Source: Dimorphilus gyrociliatus (Eukaryota > Animalia > Annelida). From it: DNA of 64,000 nt. The number at the start of each line of letters is the position of its first letter. The stretch's first letter is position 1. Of the stretch, positions 792-22,667 are shown piece after piece. Below the pieces are notes generated by a model that worked only from the letters and a program-made list of their open reading frames with translations, searched no databases and was not told where the DNA came from. The stretch spans positions 372,001 through 436,000 of the forward strand of contig CAJFCJ010000012.1 in assembly GCA_904063045.1 (NCBI GenBank), read 5' to 3'. The position numbers and the translations under genes are program-made.

Positions 792-2326
792 ATGAATACT
801 ACCATCTCTCCTGGTGTAAAAGAACTTGAAGAAATTTGGAATGAAAGACTGAAATTATTTTACAAATACTCTTTACCGAATTTGATTGCCTTCGGCTTGA
901 TTGGACATATGATTGCTATTAGTGTATTTTTGCTATCGAAGAAACGATTTCGGTCCTCAAGCGTTTATTTAACTGCGTTATCCGTTGCCGATTGCTGTTT
1001 TCTGCTCTCTCTTATTCCTATAAGCTTGGGATATTTTCAAATTGAACTATTTCACATTCCAGTTTTTTGCCAGTTGTTGATATTCGTCATACAGAATTCT
1101 GCTGCATTATCAGTTTGGTTCGTTGTATGTTTCACTGTCGAAAGATATGTGGCCGTTTTCCTACCGCTAAAGAAAGCCAACTGGTGTACTACTAGAAGAG
1201 CCAGAATTGTAGTAGTTACTCTTTCAATATTCTCTTCAATTCTTTACTTAGATTATCCTCTATCTCTTGATGTGCAAGTTCGTTCGAATTAAATCCAGAG
1301 CTATTAACATAAGAGATCTCATTAAAAAGTCTTAAAAGCTGGATAACAATAGCATTTCGAGTTATGATATTGTTAAGAATTAAAGAGACATTATTATAAG
1401 AAGTTTTAAGTAGTAGATTTCAATTACTGACATCTTAAAAATTGCTAACATTCTTAATATTCTACTGAGAGGTTCCCTATTACTTATAGGTTAATCTAAG
1501 CTATAATGCTTTATATATACTTTATATAATAGTATATTTCAACTTTTCTTTTAGCTTTTCCACATATCTATGTCTTTTACTCATGTGCTATTTCTGTACT
1601 GCTCTACCTTGGATGTCATTTTTAAGCAGAGCTCTCGTCTAAGCACTTTAAATTATCTTATTATTTTCAAAGTATAAAATATTATTAGCTAATAAAATAA
1701 GCCAAGGATATAATTCGGACGAATAATAGTTCAACACTAAGAAAAACAAAACTCTGTGCGAAACAAAGTCTAAATGGTTCAAGATCATCAATATTCATAA
1801 TTCCGTTGATACAATGTTAACTTGTATTTTACCAACTTTGATAATATTCTCGTTCAATCTCTCAATAGCATATAAAATATGGGCTACAGAAAAGAGGAGA
1901 AAACAGAGATTAATAGCTGGTAGACAATTACCACAATCTAATGATGTTAAAATTACCATTCTTTTAATAACGATATCAACTATATTTCTTCTTCTGAATG
2001 CTCCAAGTCACGCTCTGAGGTTTCGAACATTTTTGAAAGCTATTTTTGGAGATCGCATTTTTCTGAAGAATTCAGGAACCATAAAAAATCTAGAGCTTGT
2101 ATTCCAATGGCTCTACTTCTGTTCCTTTTCAATCAACTTTGTATTATATTGCGCGTGCGCGAAATCATTTAGAACAACACTGATATCATTGTGGAGGCGT
2201 TCTAGGGTATCTGTTTGCAAATCTAGCAGTTCATCTAAAATGAGAAATTTGCTACAAGGTTATAATTACCAAGAAGATACTAAATTAATAGATTTTAGAA
2301 GCTTCAAATCTTCAACAAAATCTTGA
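792..2326 (+). CDS. Orphan class A (rhodopsin-like) peptide GPCR, FMRFamide/sex-peptide-receptor-like type; predicted join(792..1277,1730..2326), 360 aa
   Basis: ORF 792..1292 encodes TM1-TM4 (GLIGH, YLTALSVADCCFL, FCQ, FTVERYVAVFLPL). ORF 1814..2326 encodes TM5-TM7 (ILPTLII, FLLLNAPSH, INFVLYCACAKSFR). A phase-0 donor CAA|GTTCGT at 1278 and acceptor ATAATAG|TTC at 1729 join them in frame. The join restores ECL2 with its Cys (FNTKKNKTLCETKSKW). Intron is 452 nt. Confidence 0.85.
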
Positions 2327-8300: not shown

Positions 8301-10110
8301 TCTTTTCGTTTCCTAACAGAAAAAAAATGGCTGGGTCATCTTTTTTACCGTTTCACGATTATTTACAAATTGTTCCTTAATAATTGATAGTGAAAACAAA
8401 ACGAAATGTTAAATTGATGTTATATATACTGTATGTGTTAATTGAGAATATTTTAATCATATATACTCTGTAAACGTATTAACCATAACCCCTTATAGGA
8501 TATAAGAAATAAGATTCCAATAAAAACCAACAGTATCTTTAGTAATTAATTATAAAGAAAGTTTATATAATTTTTCCAATGTATTATTTTCACTAACAAA
8601 CTGAGTATTCAATGTATAAATTACAGTAAGAATGTAAATAATAAATGTTGCTGGCTATCATAAAAATTTATAATGTTAATTATTTTGAAAATAATCTTAT
8701 GTTAAAAATGTAGAGCTTTATCGCCAATGACATATAGATATACTGATAGTTTTACATTTTCAATATTAATTATTTTGTCATATTCGCATGTAGAATATTT
8801 ATGTAATACTTCTTTAAGCCTCTTTATATATTTATAACAATAAGTTGACGGCAGTTATTTTTATCGTCATATTTTTCTTGTTTACCATATTATCGTTTTA
8901 AAGTTCTTATGAGTAAATAATTGTTGGTGTGGGATCCTTGACTTGTTTGATCAAAATGATATGAGATAGCGTAAGGCTTTTAAGCAAGAAACTAAAATAT
9001 TGTCGTTGTTTCTAAAAGAGGATGTTTGATATACTGATTAAGCACGCTTCATAATCTGACACTTTTTATGTTTGACTTGCTAATGTACTCGATTTCCAAC
9101 TAAGACAAAACTTAATCTTTTTTAAGTAGATAATTTTATCAATAGAGATAAAAGAAACCGGAAGTCATCCTTAGTAACTAATTAAACAATAAGGTAATAT
9201 ATCTTAAAAATGAATTTTTTCTTAATAAAATTCCTACGGAAATGATAAAATCGCCCAGCTTGGAAGAGTTCCAATTGTCTTAACAATAGACAAATGTGAT
9301 CTATTATAATTCTAATATTTACATAATAATACGCTTAATTGGTATATATTCAACCAGTTCATGGTAAAAGAAATCCGAAAAATATGCATATAGTATAAAG
9401 AACATTCTATAACCAGTTTGCATTGCTGATCTTCGAGAAACAGATATAGTCTGCTATTGAAGAATATATTTTTGAAACTGATTACAATCTAATTAAAATG
9501 ATTGCTAATAATAAAAAGAAGTCTCTTTGATGATGAAAAAGTTTCTTTAGGGGGTATTACGTAAATATATACGTAATTTTAGTTAGTGAAACAAATCAGA
9601 GATGGAATATTCTATTAGCAGAAAGGAAAAGAAATATACTAAAAACTGAAAATATAATCATACAAAGACTATATAATGTAAAACCTCTAATGTTATGTTT
9701 TTACATTCATTCTGATGACTAATTACTTTTTCAGCTTTATTTAAAAGAATAAGTTTTGCAAATCTTCCTCTAATTGAACTTAATATAGAAATCATCATTA
9801 CATCTAAATATTACATTCCTCTCATTTTCTATGATAAAAAGAATTAACATATCTGTTTTAAGTATACGAAAAATCCGTCTAACTGAGTATATATTTCACG
9901 GCTCGTTTATTATGTTTACTGTGATTATTTCCCAGTATACACTGTAGTGCCTTACTATGAAACCAATCCTACAGGATTTATTATACCAGCGTATCTAGCA
10001 AGAAGCAAATATGATTTAAGAAAAATGGAATTATAAATTATAATTAACTCTTTTATCTTATTCTTCTTTGATGACAAAAAGAGCTCCAAATTTCACATTG
10101 CCATACGTTG

Positions 10111-10116
10111 TTTATT
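10111..10116 (-). other. Candidate polyadenylation signal (AATAAA) of the neuropeptide gene
   Basis: TTTATT on + strand, about 70 nt downstream of the stop. The hexamer is common in this AT-rich DNA. Confidence 0.4.
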
Positions 10117-10184
10117 TATACAGACATTGCATAAGATTTGACAAACAACTATACATAAAGATCCCCTCTGTTTTGTCAGTAATC

Positions 10185-10511
10185 TCACTTTTTGAAGAAT
10201 CCAGATTCAATTGGCGGTAATCTCTTAGCAAATCCTGACTCTATTGGTGGATATCTTTTAGCGAAACCTGACTCCATTGGAGGTAATCTCTTGACAAACC
10301 CATACTCAAGGGGAGGGAGACGCTTGACAAATCCAGATTCCAGTGGCGGTAATCTTTTAACAAATCCCGATTCCAAAGGAGGTAACCTTTTTTTTATTTG
10401 AAATTTGCGGATAAACTCTGATAGATTATCCAATTGGTCATCACTTTTATCAATAGGTTTACTTTCCGTTACAAAAATGTAAAGTACTATGGCTAAAATG
10501 AAGAATTTCAT
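10185..10511 (-). CDS. Neuropeptide precursor (108 aa): signal peptide, acidic spacer, six KR-flanked 9-mer peptides
   Basis: ATG is at 10511; the ORF track start at 10538 is TTG. MKFFILAIVLYIFVTES is a signal-peptide-like segment. KKR/KR dibasic sites release LPPLESGFV x2, LPPLEYGFV, LPPMESGFA, YPPIESGFA and LPPIESGFF, followed by KK-stop. No C-terminal Gly, so the peptides are not amidated. Confidence 0.9.
   Translation of the reverse strand: MKFFILAIVLYIFVTESKPIDKSDDQLDNLSEFIRKFQIKKRLPPLESGFVKRLPPLESGFVKRLPPLEYGFVKRLPPMESGFAKRYPPIESGFAKRLPPIESGFFKK
10194..10391 (-). repeat. Coding tandem repeat, 6 x 33 bp (KR plus 9-aa peptide)
   Basis: The 11-codon period is visible in the translation. 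The copies differ mostly at synonymous positions. Confidence 0.9.
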
Positions 10512-10557
10512 ACTTTTTCGTACTTGATTGACAACCAAATGCAGTCCAGTTGGAAAA

Positions 10558-10570
10558 GCGCCCCCTGTTG
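10558..10570 (-). promoter_or_regulatory. CTCF-like motif CAACAGGGGGCGC
   Basis: Close match to the CTCF core CCASYAGRKGGCRS. No binding evidence. Confidence 0.4.
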
Positions 10571-10782: not shown

Positions 10783-10816
<34 letters not shown>

Positions 10817-10853
10817 AAAAGTATATATACAGATATATTTTAAGTACTATCTC

Positions 10854-10884
<31 letters not shown>

Positions 10885-10925
10885 GTCTCTTTCTACATAT
10901 ATATATATATATACATATATATATA
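10783..10925. repeat. Compound microsatellite (TA)n, (CTGT)n, (CT)n
   Basis: Directly visible simple repeats. Confidence 0.9.
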
Positions 10926-15426: not shown

Positions 15427-18245
15427 TCAATCTATCAGAGATTTCCATTTATCTCTATTTGCCAAAACGCGTTCAACAAGATTCTGAAAATTGGTATCTA
15501 AAGTAGAAAGAGCCTGTACGGTAGAAAAATAAAGAATTTAACAGAATATCTAGCAAAAACAGTAATATTGTGTTGTTACCTGATATAGAGGGAGGCAAAT
15601 CTGATCAATCCATCCGATTTGCAAATTAGGAAGCTCATCTCTTTTTTTCATATTAATAGAATGCATCGATTGTATTTGTAAAGCCTTTTCTTTTTTGCTT
15701 TGTTCGTAAAATTCTTCCATTACTAGGTTAGCAGCCTGTAGATGGCGTACATAGTAAAGTATTTTTTTTTGACAAACTATCTTTATTTTTTCTCTAAAAT
15801 TCGAAGAAAAACTTTCCAAAAGAAGAAGATTCACTTACTTGATATTGAACATTCCAGTTTTTTGTTATGGCTCCTATATCACATGCCGTCATAAGAATAG
15901 ATCTAATAGTGTTATTATCAGGTTTTGTAATGTGATTATCTTTTATCCACAGTTTTCTTTGACTGCAATAAACTTATTCATAAGAAACATATGTTAGATA
16001 AAAAAAAATTGAATTTGGTTAACCTCATATGTCGTCCTAAATCTGTGGCCAAAATAGCGTCTTTCATCATACTAATAACTGTTTGATAATCACTGGAAGA
16101 CATTTGGGAAAATATATTATGGCCTTTACTATTCAAAATGGTAATTGCTTGGTTGAAGTGATGATGTTCAAGTGTAGCACTTGTGCCATATAATTGAGCT
16201 AGGGCTGAGTCACTTCTACAAAGATAAAATATTTTAGCTTAATAAATAGGGAATATGCATTTTTCTTACTTTGATAAGAATGCATTATTAGTACCCCGAT
16301 GGTCAACATCATGACATATGCACGCAACAGCAAGACCTAATTTTTCTAACATAGTTAAATTACCTCCTAACCTTGTATTCTAATGGTGAAAAAAAAAGAG
16401 TATATTAGAAAATACATCCTATTTTCTGATAGCTTAGAATATAAATGTACACACGTTAAATATAGCAAACATTAACTGACAAACATTAAAAGCGTGCCTC
16501 CAATTGTGATATGCAATTGATCTATAATTTTTTCGAACAGCCAAAAAGAACCTGCAGACAGTCTAAAAAAAAAGGGAAATAGAACTGTTTAGAGTATATA
16601 AAAAGGGAAAAGAACATTTTTACTCTCTTTATTTAATTTAATTTAATTTGTAACATCTGATATATTTATTACCTCTTCATTCATAGAAAAATGTGATATA
16701 AATTCCATTTTATGAAATAAATCAATAGTTGCTTTTAGCATCTGGTCAGAAGATAAACTGAAATCATCAAATGTTAACCTATGTATCTCATCCCTGTCGT
16801 ATTCAATTTGTTTGGCCTGTAAAGATAAATTAATTTATTTATAGCTTTTATTAAAGAAGGGAAATCAGTTAAAAAAATGCGTTAAACTTATTAATGTAAT
16901 AAAGTTTGCTAATCTGTTAAAGTTTTTCTATAAATATCTCTTTTTTTTCTATTTATCGCATTCATTTAAAGCTACTTATTTTAAATGATAATCGTTTTAT
17001 TTATGAAACCTGAAATTCTTTCATTTCTTCAACTGGAACTGTTGTATGATAAGATAAAACCTGTTGGATAAGAAAAGAAACAACATTAACTGACGCCATC
17101 TATTGAAAGGAAAAAGAAAGACAAACGAGAAAAAATAGTTTACATTCAAATAAGAGTATTGTCTGATCACGATGACGTTCTTTAGGTTTATTTTAAGTAC
17201 AGTTTGTTACTATTCTTAAGCTTCGTGGATAGAAGATTAAATATAGAGCTACTGATTTCATTAATAAGGATCGTTATTTTCCTTATAGACTATGGAAATT
17301 GAAATTTCATGCTGAAATTTTTGCATGAATTAAAATTTTACATTTGTTTTCTTTTCGTAAAAGACTTATAAAAGAAGAGTAATAGCTTATTTAGAAGGAA
17401 ATGCAGTAAGTGACCTGAATTCGAATTTCTACCGCAATTACTAATATCGCCTTTAACTGCATGTAAATTAATGATCTTATTGAGGAAGAGTAACATTTAG
17501 ACTCGTATATTGGTTTACCTCTAGAGCAACAGTCCGTTGAGCTGACGCTTTAGAAATTTCATCGTATAAAATACAATTGTTAATTGCTAAACCACAAAAA
17601 ATACTGTAAGCCTGTTGAAATAAAAAAATAGAATAGATAAGATTTATATAAAGAAAACAATAAGAATGGAATAGTAAAAGAAAAAGATTAATTATCTTAC
17701 GCCAAAGAGCATTTCATCGTATTCCTGGAACGTTCCAAAATGTTTATTTAATAACATTATCGCACCAAGTTTTCTTGATTCTGAATTTAAAATTGGCTTG
17801 CAAAATAAACTATTTACTGGCGTTTTAATATTCCTCAACAGTTCCTATAGAAATAAAATGCAAAATAATCAGACTTCATTAATGCGTATCTCAATAATAT
17901 ATTAAATATTAGTAAAATGAAAAAACTGTTACAAGTACATCATTCACATCCTCTGTGACGATTTTAATATCCTCTTCTATGAATAGAGAACGCTTAGCAA
18001 TAGCTCCCAGCTCGTAAAAGGGATGCTTGTGACTACAAAAGAAAAAGTTATACTTTATAAACGGTAATCAGAAATTATAATATACTGTATAAGAAAGTAG
18101 ACATATATACAGTATTTATGAATCTACATTCATATTTAATATATTCCGTTTAAGAATATAAAAGTATTCTATTCATAAATCTTTCTTCTAAATAAGTACA
18201 TTAAAGATGGTGGATTATGCAGAAATTCATATACTGTATATATAA

Positions 18246-21300: not shown

Positions 21301-22667
21301 CCACCAAGGCCTATAGTTGTATTTCATGGAGAAAACAAATATCAATAATAGAAGAGTCGACTGCAAAGAAGAAGAAAAGGAGGAGAAGGAGAAGGGGCAA
21401 ACAGAAAAGAAGACTGTAGGAGTGACAGAAGAAAGAAAAAATTTCAAGTTTTATTGTTCTAAATCCTTTGAATGGACATTTTTTTGTACAAAGTAATAGT
21501 TTAGGTTAATTGTACAAATTTATTAAGATTAAAAGGTAAAAGTTTAAAAATCAATTATATAATAATATATATATATATATATATATATATGCTGTATATA
21601 TGCTGTATAATACAAATCAATATAGTATAAAAGTACAGTATGGATATTTTTTATGAAACATGAAATCTTCTGGAAATAGTTTTAAAGAAAATGATTGAGA
21701 CCAAGTTGTTATAGGCTTATTTGGAATCCTTATACCTAATTAGCCACGTTACAATATACAATAAGTAAAATTTTTACCTAGTGTTTACAGGAAAAAGAAA
21801 AACTATAAATAGATATGTAAATATAAAATGCAACATAAAAAGCATAAACTGTACGTAATAAATATTCTTGTTCTGGCGTAATCGTAGACTTTTATATATC
21901 ATATTTTATCAAGAGAATAGTTCTTATATGTACTATACATTCTATACACTTTTTAATCATGCATAAAATTATAACTGGCGTCTAAATATATATATAAATA
22001 CTGTATATAAAATATGCTAAATAAGTTTCAATTGCAAAATAATCTAGTCACTTACCATCTCTATGGGACGAAATCTTAGACATTTTTCCGAAGCCACACA
22101 TTTCGCTAAATATCCACCAACATCACTTGCCTTATCATCCAATATCAATCTTCCTTTCTTAACCTTCAATAATTCTACTTTTGTTGCAGATAGTAATATT
22201 TCAGCGTTAACTGATATTTTCTTTAAAATACTTGATAATTGTAAATCATATGCAATATCTTTGACTATCTCAAGAAAAAAATCTGTTTCATTAGAATCTT
22301 TTAATTTTCTTTTCATAAATTCATTTTGAGATGAAAATCCTGTGGGAATTTTCACTTTGGATTGAATATAATCGGACAGCAAAAAATTAGCAGACGACGG
22401 TAAACTAAAGCAATGCCTTAACTCTCTTCTACTTCCTCGTCTTTTTTGAAATTTTTGAGAATCCTCCGAGCATTCGTTTATTGTTTGTAAAGTTTTAAAT
22501 TTTGTTTGTAGAATTTGTTGTCTAGATTTTTGAAGATCAGTAACAGGTTTATAACTATTTTTTAACAGCCATTTATTAACTAAGGTTAATTTTGCCTTTT
22601 TCAGGAAATAATTCTCTACAAAGGCTTCATTTACATCCAACCATTTTGTTATATCGTCGGGATTCAT
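15427..22667 (-). CDS. PDE11A: PDE11-like cyclic nucleotide phosphodiesterase with two GAF domains; 16 coding exons, about 796 aa
   Basis: Exons on minus strand: 22667-22056, 20932-20747, 19654-19565, 19395-19255, 19188-19130, 18032-17939 (donor could be 6 nt further), 17844-17701, 17611-17519, 17060-17010, 16816-16673, 16562-16455, 16379-16270, 16215-16024, 15962-15839, 15735-15580, 15513-15427. All are GT-AG and phase-consistent. Motifs: N-terminal [18 protein letters not shown] (PDE11-type), [34 protein letters not shown], and catalytic [75 protein letters not shown]. Confidence 0.92.
18232..18372. repeat. (TA)n compound microsatellite in a PDE intron
   Basis: Directly visible; interrupted by TACTGTA. 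Confidence 0.9.
21565..21590. repeat. (TA)n microsatellite in the first coding intron of the PDE gene
   Basis: Directly visible. Confidence 0.9.

Follow-up and report, generated by a model that had tools for sequence, protein, structure and literature searches.

At positions 10185-10511 of the window, by which we mean the whole 64,000-nucleotide stretch of Dimorphilus gyrociliatus DNA that was analysed, lies an open reading frame that raises two questions: whether it encodes a working precursor of secreted peptides, and whether those peptides belong to a family that already has a name. An earlier note, made from the sequence alone, had read the frame as a neuropeptide precursor and had wavered between a much-shortened pedal peptide/orcokinin and a new, lineage-restricted family. 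The window is very AT-rich animal DNA (26-33% GC), and at its stop-codon frequency a 108-codon open run would arise by chance with a probability of about 4e-4. The frame occupies a single exon on the minus strand, running from an ATG at 10511 to a TGA at 10187-10185. A bacterial-style ORF caller extended it to a TTG at 10538; the eukaryotic start is the ATG at 10511, which has an A at -3. The gene is present as a single copy in the D. gyrociliatus assembly (77.9 Mb, 349 contigs).

The encoded protein of 108 residues has the prohormone layout that had been claimed for it, in that a signal peptide, six KR-flanked 9-mers and the lack of an amidation Gly can all be read from the sequence. The signal peptide is made up of Met-Lys, a 13-residue hydrophobic core (residues 3-15) and a closing Thr-Glu-Ser, and signal peptidase is expected to cut after Ser17, with Thr and Ser at -3 and -1. 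This call was made by hydropathy and the -3/-1 rule, with no dedicated predictor, and an equally rule-based call places a signal peptide at the N-terminus of the ortholog described below. The segment that follows (KPID...KFQI, 22 residues) had been called an acidic spacer; the spacer is there, but with five acidic and four basic residues it is only mildly acidic. Next come the six nonapeptides, LPPLESGFV (twice), LPPLEYGFV, LPPMESGFA, YPPIESGFA and LPPIESGFF, which give the consensus xPPxE(S/Y)GF(V/A/F). They are delimited by KKR, five internal KR sites and a terminal KK before the stop, all of which are kept in both species. Gly is absent before every basic pair of the array, and the nonapeptides are therefore predicted to have free C-termini and no amidation. 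They are anionic, with a computed pI of about 4, and the computed [M+H]+ values of the predicted free acids are 958.524 (LPPLESGFV), 1034.556, 948.450, 980.472 and 1006.524. At the DNA level, Tandem Repeats Finder describes the array as a repeat with a period of 33 nt, 5.7 copies and 72% identity. Coordinates of all features are collected in Table 1.

Table 1. Features of the minus-strand gene and its flanks, in coordinates of the window; L001 is a contig that carries the ortholog
Feature	Position	Strand	Basis or remark
TATA-like ATAAAATTAA	10571-10580	-	~60-70 nt upstream of the ATG; putative role
Conserved proximal upstream block	10512..10568	-	probable 5'UTR / core promoter; putative role
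Whole coding sequence in one exon, 108 codons and the TGA stop (10185-10187)	10185..10511	-	sequence; ortholog of the same length with the same stop
Signal peptide, residues 1-17	10461..10511	-	hydropathy, -3/-1 rule; predicted cut
Spacer / N-terminal propeptide, residues 18-39, KPIDKSDDQLDNLSEFIRKFQI	10395..10460	-	conserved, mildly acidic; dN/dS 0.07
KKR, first predicted convertase site	10386..10394	-	read from the sequence
Array of six nonapeptides, 27 nt each, KR between, KK at end	10188..10385	-	dN/dS 0.031; copies begin at 10385, 10352, 10319, 10286, 10253, 10220
Conserved 3'UTR block, 118 nt, with AATAAA (10111-10116)	10039..10156	-	88-93% identity to L001; putative role
Second conserved block, with second AATAAA (9906-9911)	9892..9931	-	92.5% identity to L001; putative role

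Evidence that the gene is maintained by selection comes from a single relative. A word-index search of 5.8 billion protein clusters, which covered the 59-189 aa range, returned one protein (P0001) with 87% identity. Three Logan contigs (runs SRR23372216, SRR23372228 and SRR23372229) encode it, and their long AT-rich flanks and a T homopolymer at the end show that they are genomic DNA and not cDNA. Over 1 kb these contigs are only about 75% identical to the window, which means that their source is another, sister species; the 25% DNA divergence likewise excludes a contaminant from D. gyrociliatus itself. The coding sequence of the ortholog (L001:1588-1914) has an equal length and stops at the identical codon. 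By the Nei-Gojobori method, the whole coding sequence shows a dS of 0.88, a dN of 0.066 and a dN/dS of 0.074, with the highest regional ratio in the signal peptide (0.30) and the lowest in the peptide array. The 29 nucleotide differences in the array are distributed 5/0/24 over codon positions 1, 2 and 3, and 3 of its 68 residues differ. The peptide array is under strong purifying selection, and the earlier reading of the frame as a functional gene gains its support from this cross-species constraint (dN/dS 0.03 in the array at dS 0.88). All six copies match those of the ortholog one to one, and the two species share the variants that mark single copies, Tyr6 in copy 3 and Tyr1 (YPP) in copy 5. 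A pooled comparison of the copies with one another shows saturation at synonymous but not at replacement sites (pS 0.81 vs pN 0.14). This saturation, along with the retained copy-specific variants, indicates that the array is old and that each copy is maintained individually; judging from the sequences, it is not a product of recent homogenisation.

Conserved non-coding blocks on both sides of the coding sequence appear to outline a transcription unit on the minus strand. The 40 nt that precede the ATG (10511-10550) share 92.5% identity with L001, compared with 33-75% further upstream, and in the DNA between and outside the conserved blocks identity drops to 33-60%. The 3'UTR block holds its 88-93% identity against a synonymous divergence (dS) of 0.88 in the coding sequence. 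The first AATAAA is found 68 nt past the stop, and the block at 9892-9931 may represent an alternative, longer 3' end. A search of the whole window against Rfam, including the conserved 3'UTR block, matched no family. The window also holds a two-exon orphan class-A GPCR (792-1292 and 1814-2326), located 7.9 kb away on the opposite strand in convergent orientation; the best matches of its first exon are weak (bradykinin B1, GPR35, GPR4 and SSTR2, at about 1e-9).

As for a name, the full published inventory of neuropeptide precursors from D. gyrociliatus (PMC7854359, file 4) contains no ESGF peptide. The same paper lists pedal peptide 1 (PP1, xFDSIGxSAFGGL) and pedal peptide 2 (PP2, MIDSIGSSLL) for this species. 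An xPPxESGF precursor is likewise absent from the accessible parts of the supplements to the Platynereis catalogue (PMC3890597), to a study of molluscs and other lophotrochozoans (PMC6425005) and to one of nemerteans, brachiopods and phoronids (PMC8557429). Full-text literature searches with the peptide strings of the worm gene gave nothing relevant, and those with the strings of the bivalve peptides introduced below gave no relevant paper. A Pfam scan detected no domain, and exact-protein contig look-ups with the 108-aa protein of the window returned nothing. The ESM Atlas does contain the identical 108-aa sequence, and a public gene model without a name therefore probably exists; the ESM Atlas structure neighbours were discarded as meaningless at a model pLDDT of 0.39. 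Language-model feature neighbours are neuropeptide precursors of many families (allatostatin, MIP, PBAN, tachykinin and FLP, at 0.83-0.88), a result that serves as a lead only. A metagenome scan with a two-unit back-translated pattern yielded seven single chance matches on GC-rich bacterial contigs and no relative. The statement that no named precursor carries these peptides has thus stood up across the literature, four spiralian catalogues as far as they were accessible, and large protein collections. The precursor is genuine and previously uncatalogued, a gene of an ordinary kind whose peptide is new, and its peptide family appears to be an orphan that has so far been seen only in D. gyrociliatus and one sister species.

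More distant similarity was sought with a two-sequence HMMER profile (gene and ortholog) run against 1.84 billion proteins. This returned 105 proteins at E <=1e-3, about 90% of which are unrelated repeat proteins, for example an ankyrin protein with ELPPIESNQQT repeats and proteins with LPPNESC repeats. Because such junk repeats scored as well, the E-values are inflated by repetition and unusable at face value. The sole matches with a prohormone design are molluscan, nine precursors from bivalves and one from a gastropod, and every one is labelled uncharacterized. Among those from bivalves are the clusters of Mya arenaria XP_052782698 (P0018) and Ruditapes philippinarum XP_060589703 (P0006), along with P0011/17/25/31/32/42/63; the bivalve precursors carry 10-20 KK- or KR-flanked 9-10-mers of the FDRLTSGFV or GLDRLSSGFV type. 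The gastropod precursor, Elysia crispata KAK3754513 (P0098), is built from units of PFDPLGSGFIS, and a word-index search for family names with this precursor recovered only uncharacterized gastropod proteins. Similar short units are found in other molluscs, GMDNIGSGFI in a scaphopod and HLDSLGMGFV in a chiton, in the accessible part of a supplementary file that also holds classical pedal peptide precursors. When 153 bivalve units and 12 worm units (from the two species) were aligned from the C-terminus, both sets had a hydrophobic residue at position 1, L/I/M at position 4, S with minor Y and A at position 6, G with rare S at position 7, F at position 8 and V at position 9, where the worm also has A and F. 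Positions 2 and 3 are Asp (91%) and Arg in the bivalves vs Pro and Pro in the worm, and position 5 is variable in the former and an invariant Glu in the latter.

Searches of the six-frame worm genome gave a mixed picture. The Elysia precursor retrieved PP2 (E 5e-18), then this gene (E 4.7e-6), and at a third locus an unrelated WI-peptide precursor (E 3.9e-3), while the Mya precursor retrieved PP2 and the WI gene but missed the xPPxESGF gene. At the PP2 locus the back-translated unit pattern forms three tandem sites, with none in the reversed control, and the ORF there matches the repeat region of the published DgyrP945 sequence without a difference, which identifies the assembly as that of D. 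gyrociliatus. In pairwise BLASTP, the 108-aa protein scored 42 bits against Elysia and 37 against Mya, and the sense-frame protein gave no alignment to the worm's own PP2. Significance was assessed by permutation, in which one random reordering of the nine peptide codons was applied to all six units, leaving KR sites, composition and periodicity intact, and 6000 such permutations per target were scored by Smith-Waterman local alignment. The observed score was reached by 36 of 6000 permutations against Elysia and by 27 of 6000 against Mya (p 0.0045-0.006), and by 573 of 6000 against PP2 and 1786 of 6000 against the WI control. The order-specific resemblance to the molluscan precursors is real at a p of about 0.005, a value that stands before multiple testing and for targets picked database-wide. 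The antisense frame of the gene, tested against PP2, was matched by only 24 of 6000 permutations and scored 27 bits in BLASTP. Since a coding and a non-coding frame match equally well, at least one of the two resemblances is not ordinary descent, and a motif-level match of this strength is no proof of homology.

How far, then, do the peptides resemble the pedal peptide/orcokinin family, whose echo had been noticed in their SGF ending? The echo is real at the motif level, given that the sole prohormone-like matches are molluscan pedal-peptide-like precursors. The family trait of non-amidated, multi-copy peptides is present, and so is the C-terminal signature ..(S/G/A)-(G/S)-F-(A/V/I), which takes the form S-G-F-V/A/F in 11 of the 12 units from two species. 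The N-terminal x-(F/L/I/M)-D-x-(I/L) motif is absent; Pro-Pro occupies positions 2-3 in 12/12 units, and only the hydrophobic positions 1 and 4 of the motif remain. The family Asp, in turn, occurs in 91% of the units from bivalves and in every catalogued pedal peptide inspected in the accessible parts of the sources. The gene is an orphan, pedal-peptide-like precursor and is not assigned as a member of the family, because the antisense match is as good and the family Asp is missing.

Comparison with known systems sharpens this picture. The short molluscan precursors have in common with the worm gene a signal peptide and many dibasic-flanked, non-amidated copies of 9-11 residues with a C-terminal half of [LIM]-x-[S/Y/A]-G-F-[V/I]. 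However, their peptides start with Phe/Leu-Asp-Arg or Phe-Asp-Pro, whereas those of the worm start with Leu/Tyr-Pro-Pro and have the invariant Glu5. The molluscan precursors are also 350-760 aa long with acidic spacers between their 10-20 copies, compared with 108 aa and six back-to-back copies in the worm, and the N-terminal regions are unrelated. The PP1 and PP2 precursors of D. gyrociliatus and Platynereis (PMC7854359, PMC3890597, PMC6425005) follow the same design as the worm gene. D. gyrociliatus PP2 comes from the same genome, and its peptide is short (MIDSIGSSLL, 10 residues) and non-amidated, with hydrophobic positions 1, 4, 8 and 9 that can be aligned. The x-(F/I/L)-D-S-I-G carried by PP1 and PP2 is nevertheless missing from the nonapeptides; PP2 has an intron after its signal-peptide exon, while the xPPxESGF coding sequence is intron-less, and the two genes lie on different contigs (C1 and C12, respectively). 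Aplysia pedal peptide (PLDSVYGTHGMSGFA), arthropod orcokinin and starfish SMP/ArPPLN1 (..FDPLSAGFTD) are likewise non-amidated and multi-copy with S/A-G-F near the C-terminus, and the starfish and Elysia forms contain P-L-x-x-G-F; unlike the worm nonapeptides, the Aplysia, orcokinin and starfish peptides have 13-18 residues and a conserved N-terminal Asp motif. Annelid FVRIamide (FxRIamide) precursors also have S-G-F-V or S-S-F-V within their repeated units, but their peptides go on with R-I-Gly and are amidated, whereas in the worm F-V is directly followed by KR. A relationship to FVRIamide was rejected as chance overlap, as there is no R-I-G after F-V and D. gyrociliatus has its own FVRIamide gene.

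Several other readings of the locus have to be weighed against a minus-strand peptide precursor. The setting, very AT-rich DNA in which a 33-nt unit is tandemly repeated and microsatellites lie close by, suggests that a functionless ORF may have arisen by chance within the repeat. This reading is contradicted by the 5/0/24 distribution of substitutions and the array dN/dS of 0.03, by a start, stop and length that were kept while the flanking DNA of the ortholog largely diverged, and by peptides that are still conserved among copies saturated at synonymous sites; we regard it as scarcely credible and have rejected it. The plus strand poses a subtler problem, as the frame at 10192-10401 is also open in both species and reads as units of xPDSIGGNLL, for example NPDSIGGNLLA. 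This could be taken for an exon of a pedal-peptide-2/orcokinin-B-type gene, of which the minus-strand ORF would be a by-product, and the match to PP2 described above (p of about 0.004) speaks in its favor. The openness of the plus frame, however, is explained by the lack of stop-generating codon pairs in the array. Because it shares its third codon positions with the minus-strand frame, most synonymous change in either frame leaves the protein read from the other unaltered. The plus frame has no ATG, signal peptide or dibasic sites between its units. Compared with the ortholog, 9 of its 67 residues have changed, and radically so (I/R/S/K at sites that vary conservatively among L/I/M in the minus frame), against 3 of 68 in the sense frame. 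The AATAAA signals and conserved UTR-like blocks also agree with the minus strand. Coding by the plus strand is exceedingly improbable on these grounds and was rejected. A related idea, which we consider a long shot, is that the gene was born antisense to a pedal-peptide-2/orcokinin-B-type array, its D-S-I-G-G signal turned into PP-I-E-S-G-F by strand switching; the frozen codon positions 1 and 2 would then preserve the ancestral xPDSIGGNLL as a fossil.

A strongly derived member of the pedal peptide/orcokinin family, that is, a third PP-type gene beside PP1 and PP2 for which common descent is plausible, is a reading that we entertain tentatively, at a little under even odds. The peptide would be a short 9-10-residue form as in bivalves, chitons and scaphopods, in which Phe/Leu-Asp-x became Leu-Pro-Pro, and this would refine the reading as a peptide prohormone, with which it is compatible. 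In its favor are the residue sets shared with the 153 bivalve units (FDRLxSGFV) at positions 4, 6, 7, 8 and 9, the equal length of nine residues, free C-terminus and dibasic flanks of those units, the P-L-x-S-G-F shared with Elysia PFDPLGSGFIS (42 bits), the rank of this gene directly behind PP2 in the genome search with the Elysia precursor, and the small number of within-unit permutations (27-36 of 6000) that reach the observed scores. Every non-amidated, multi-copy ...SGF(V/A)-KR peptide found in the accessible parts of the spiralian catalogues is a pedal peptide, and the starfish PP-type peptides include DPLSAGF. Against it stand the absence of the hallmark Asp (position 2-3) from the worm units, the lack of sense-frame similarity to the worm's own PP2, the failure of the Mya precursor to retrieve the gene, the equally significant antisense frame, the repeat-inflated HMMER E-values that junk proteins also attain, and a p of about 0.005 that precedes correction for the hundreds of peptide families implicitly screened. 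A different kind of doubt concerns the role of the product, as architecture alone cannot separate a neuropeptide from a gland pheromone, an antimicrobial, a cocoon, mucus or gamete-signalling peptide that is secreted by the same convertase route. Restriction to two close species is often seen with fast-evolving reproductive and defence peptides. A dN/dS of 0.03 at a dS of 0.88 is, however, the opposite of the rapid evolution usual in reproductive and immune peptides, short anionic peptides (pI of about 4) are unlikely antimicrobials, and the closest feature-space neighbours are all neuropeptide precursors. A secreted role of this other kind is judged unlikely.

We put at roughly 0.72 the probability that the locus holds a functional gene, present once and free of introns, whose product is a secreted precursor with several peptide copies; most probably this is a prohormone of the neuropeptide or peptide-hormone type, which would be expressed in neurons. 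Its processing would begin with signal peptidase; prohormone convertases would act next, at KKR and at each of the five KR sites within the array, and a carboxypeptidase would then trim the basic residues. The predicted products are six free-acid nonapeptides of five sequences and the conserved, mildly acidic N-terminal peptide, which may itself be bioactive or serve in sorting. Among the genes of D. gyrociliatus are that for the convertase-helper protein 7B2 and those for a full complement of classical prohormones. At five of the six KR sites the following residue is Leu, a context that is reportedly less reliably cleaved in insect precursors; KR-Leu and KR-Met junctions are also present in the worm's own FVRIamide and PP2 precursors. 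Peptides with an X-Pro-Pro N-terminus resist both general aminopeptidases and X-Pro dipeptidyl peptidases, enzymes that do not cleave in front of Pro. This enzymology makes the argument for peptide stability in the earlier note a reasonable one, and the invariant X-Pro-Pro start would be expected to shield the nonapeptides from ordinary aminopeptidases. Glu5, which is invariant, and the Gly-Phe-hydrophobic end are the likely determinants of receptor binding, with a GPCR as the predicted target.

Pedal peptide/orcokinin-type peptides are known to act on cilia and muscle, and pedal peptides speed up the pedal cilia in Tritonia (PMC5656890). Their receptors were unidentified as of 2017 (PMC5656890), and a literature search for pedal peptide/orcokinin receptors found none. 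If the nonapeptides are pedal-peptide-like in action, modulation of ciliary beating or muscle tone would be a natural, if speculative, guess; the worm moves by ciliary gliding, and molluscan pedal peptides drive the beating of cilia.

For an annelid nervous system that is miniaturised yet 'complete', D. gyrociliatus serves as a model species, and the neuropeptide complement published for it was presented as canonical. The gene adds to it a strongly constrained candidate signalling peptide that is absent from the published list, meaning that this complement is incomplete. The practical value is modest, namely one further ligand for receptor deorphanisation screens. Should the gene be a derived pedal-peptide paralogue, it would imply that the family can lose its hallmark Asp, which bears on the trust placed in motif searches, and it would be relevant to the hunt for pedal peptide/orcokinin receptors. 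Should it be unrelated to the pedal peptides, it would represent a young, lineage-restricted peptide system under tight selection.

The DNA around the peptide gene, whose product carries six KR-separated nonapeptides such as LPPLESGFV, holds several further features, and these are collected in the table together with an antisense frame found elsewhere in the worm's genome.

Features of the window and of the pedal peptide 2 (PP2) gene; window positions unless marked
Feature	Position	Strand	Remarks
Two-exon orphan rhodopsin-type GPCR	792-1292 + 1814-2326	+	
Conserved non-coding blocks 3' of the stop	10039-10156 + 9892-9931	-	identity to sister species
Open antisense frame, units xPDSIGGNLL	10192-10401	+	wobble positions shared with CDS
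(TA)n and (GACA)n/(GA)n microsatellites	10790-10900		immediately upstream of peptide gene
Two ORFs	15550-15834 and 22044-22667	-	
Single-exon class-A GPCR, 602 aa	33005-34813	-	7tm_1, E 4.8e-62
Open antisense frame of PP2 gene, 105 codons	L005:1359-1676 (own genome C1:3203055-3203372)	-	

The two-exon GPCR lies 7.9 kb from the peptide gene in convergent orientation, and its first exon gave only weak PDB matches (bradykinin B1, GPR35, GPR4, and SSTR2, ~1e-9). In the single-exon GPCR the third intracellular loop is very long and rich in Lys and Ser, and the receptor looks aminergic or muscarinic-like. The two ORFs look like exons for the catalytic domain and the N-terminus of a cyclic-nucleotide phosphodiesterase, in a gene that would extend over ~7 kb; the sole Pfam match is a weak one of the longer ORF to CENP-N.

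Both non-coding blocks share 88-93% identity with their sister-species counterparts, even though synonymous sites are close to saturation. Each contains AATAAA and neither matched any Rfam family; they may act as regulatory elements within the UTR or mark alternative 3' ends. On the other side of the gene, the sister-species contig has a TA/CT-rich tract (L001:1200-1280) at the position equivalent to the microsatellites.

The antisense frame of the peptide gene is free of stops in both species, and its units resemble the worm's own PP2 unit, MIDSIGSSLL, with a permutation p of ~0.004 when the nine peptide codons are reordered identically in all six units. By this measure, the match is equal in strength to that between the sense strand and molluscan pedal-peptide-like precursors. 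The antisense units of the PP2 gene contain KR (e.g., KRLEPMVSIILF) and are loosely like KRLPPMESGFA, and this frame gives a weak BLASTP match to the new precursor (17.7 bits, E 0.027). The likeness of the peptide gene's antisense units to PP2 is either a coincidence or a trace of antisense origin.

The bivalve precursors P0006 (Ruditapes philippinarum XP_060589703 cluster), P0011, P0017, P0018 (Mya arenaria XP_052782698), P0025, P0031, P0032, P0042, and P0063 each carry 10-20 copies of FDRLxSGFV-type 9-10-mers. All are annotated as uncharacterized, and their peptide strings were not found in the searchable literature. Because their best match in the worm is its PP2 gene, they are probably the form that pedal peptide 2 takes in bivalves.
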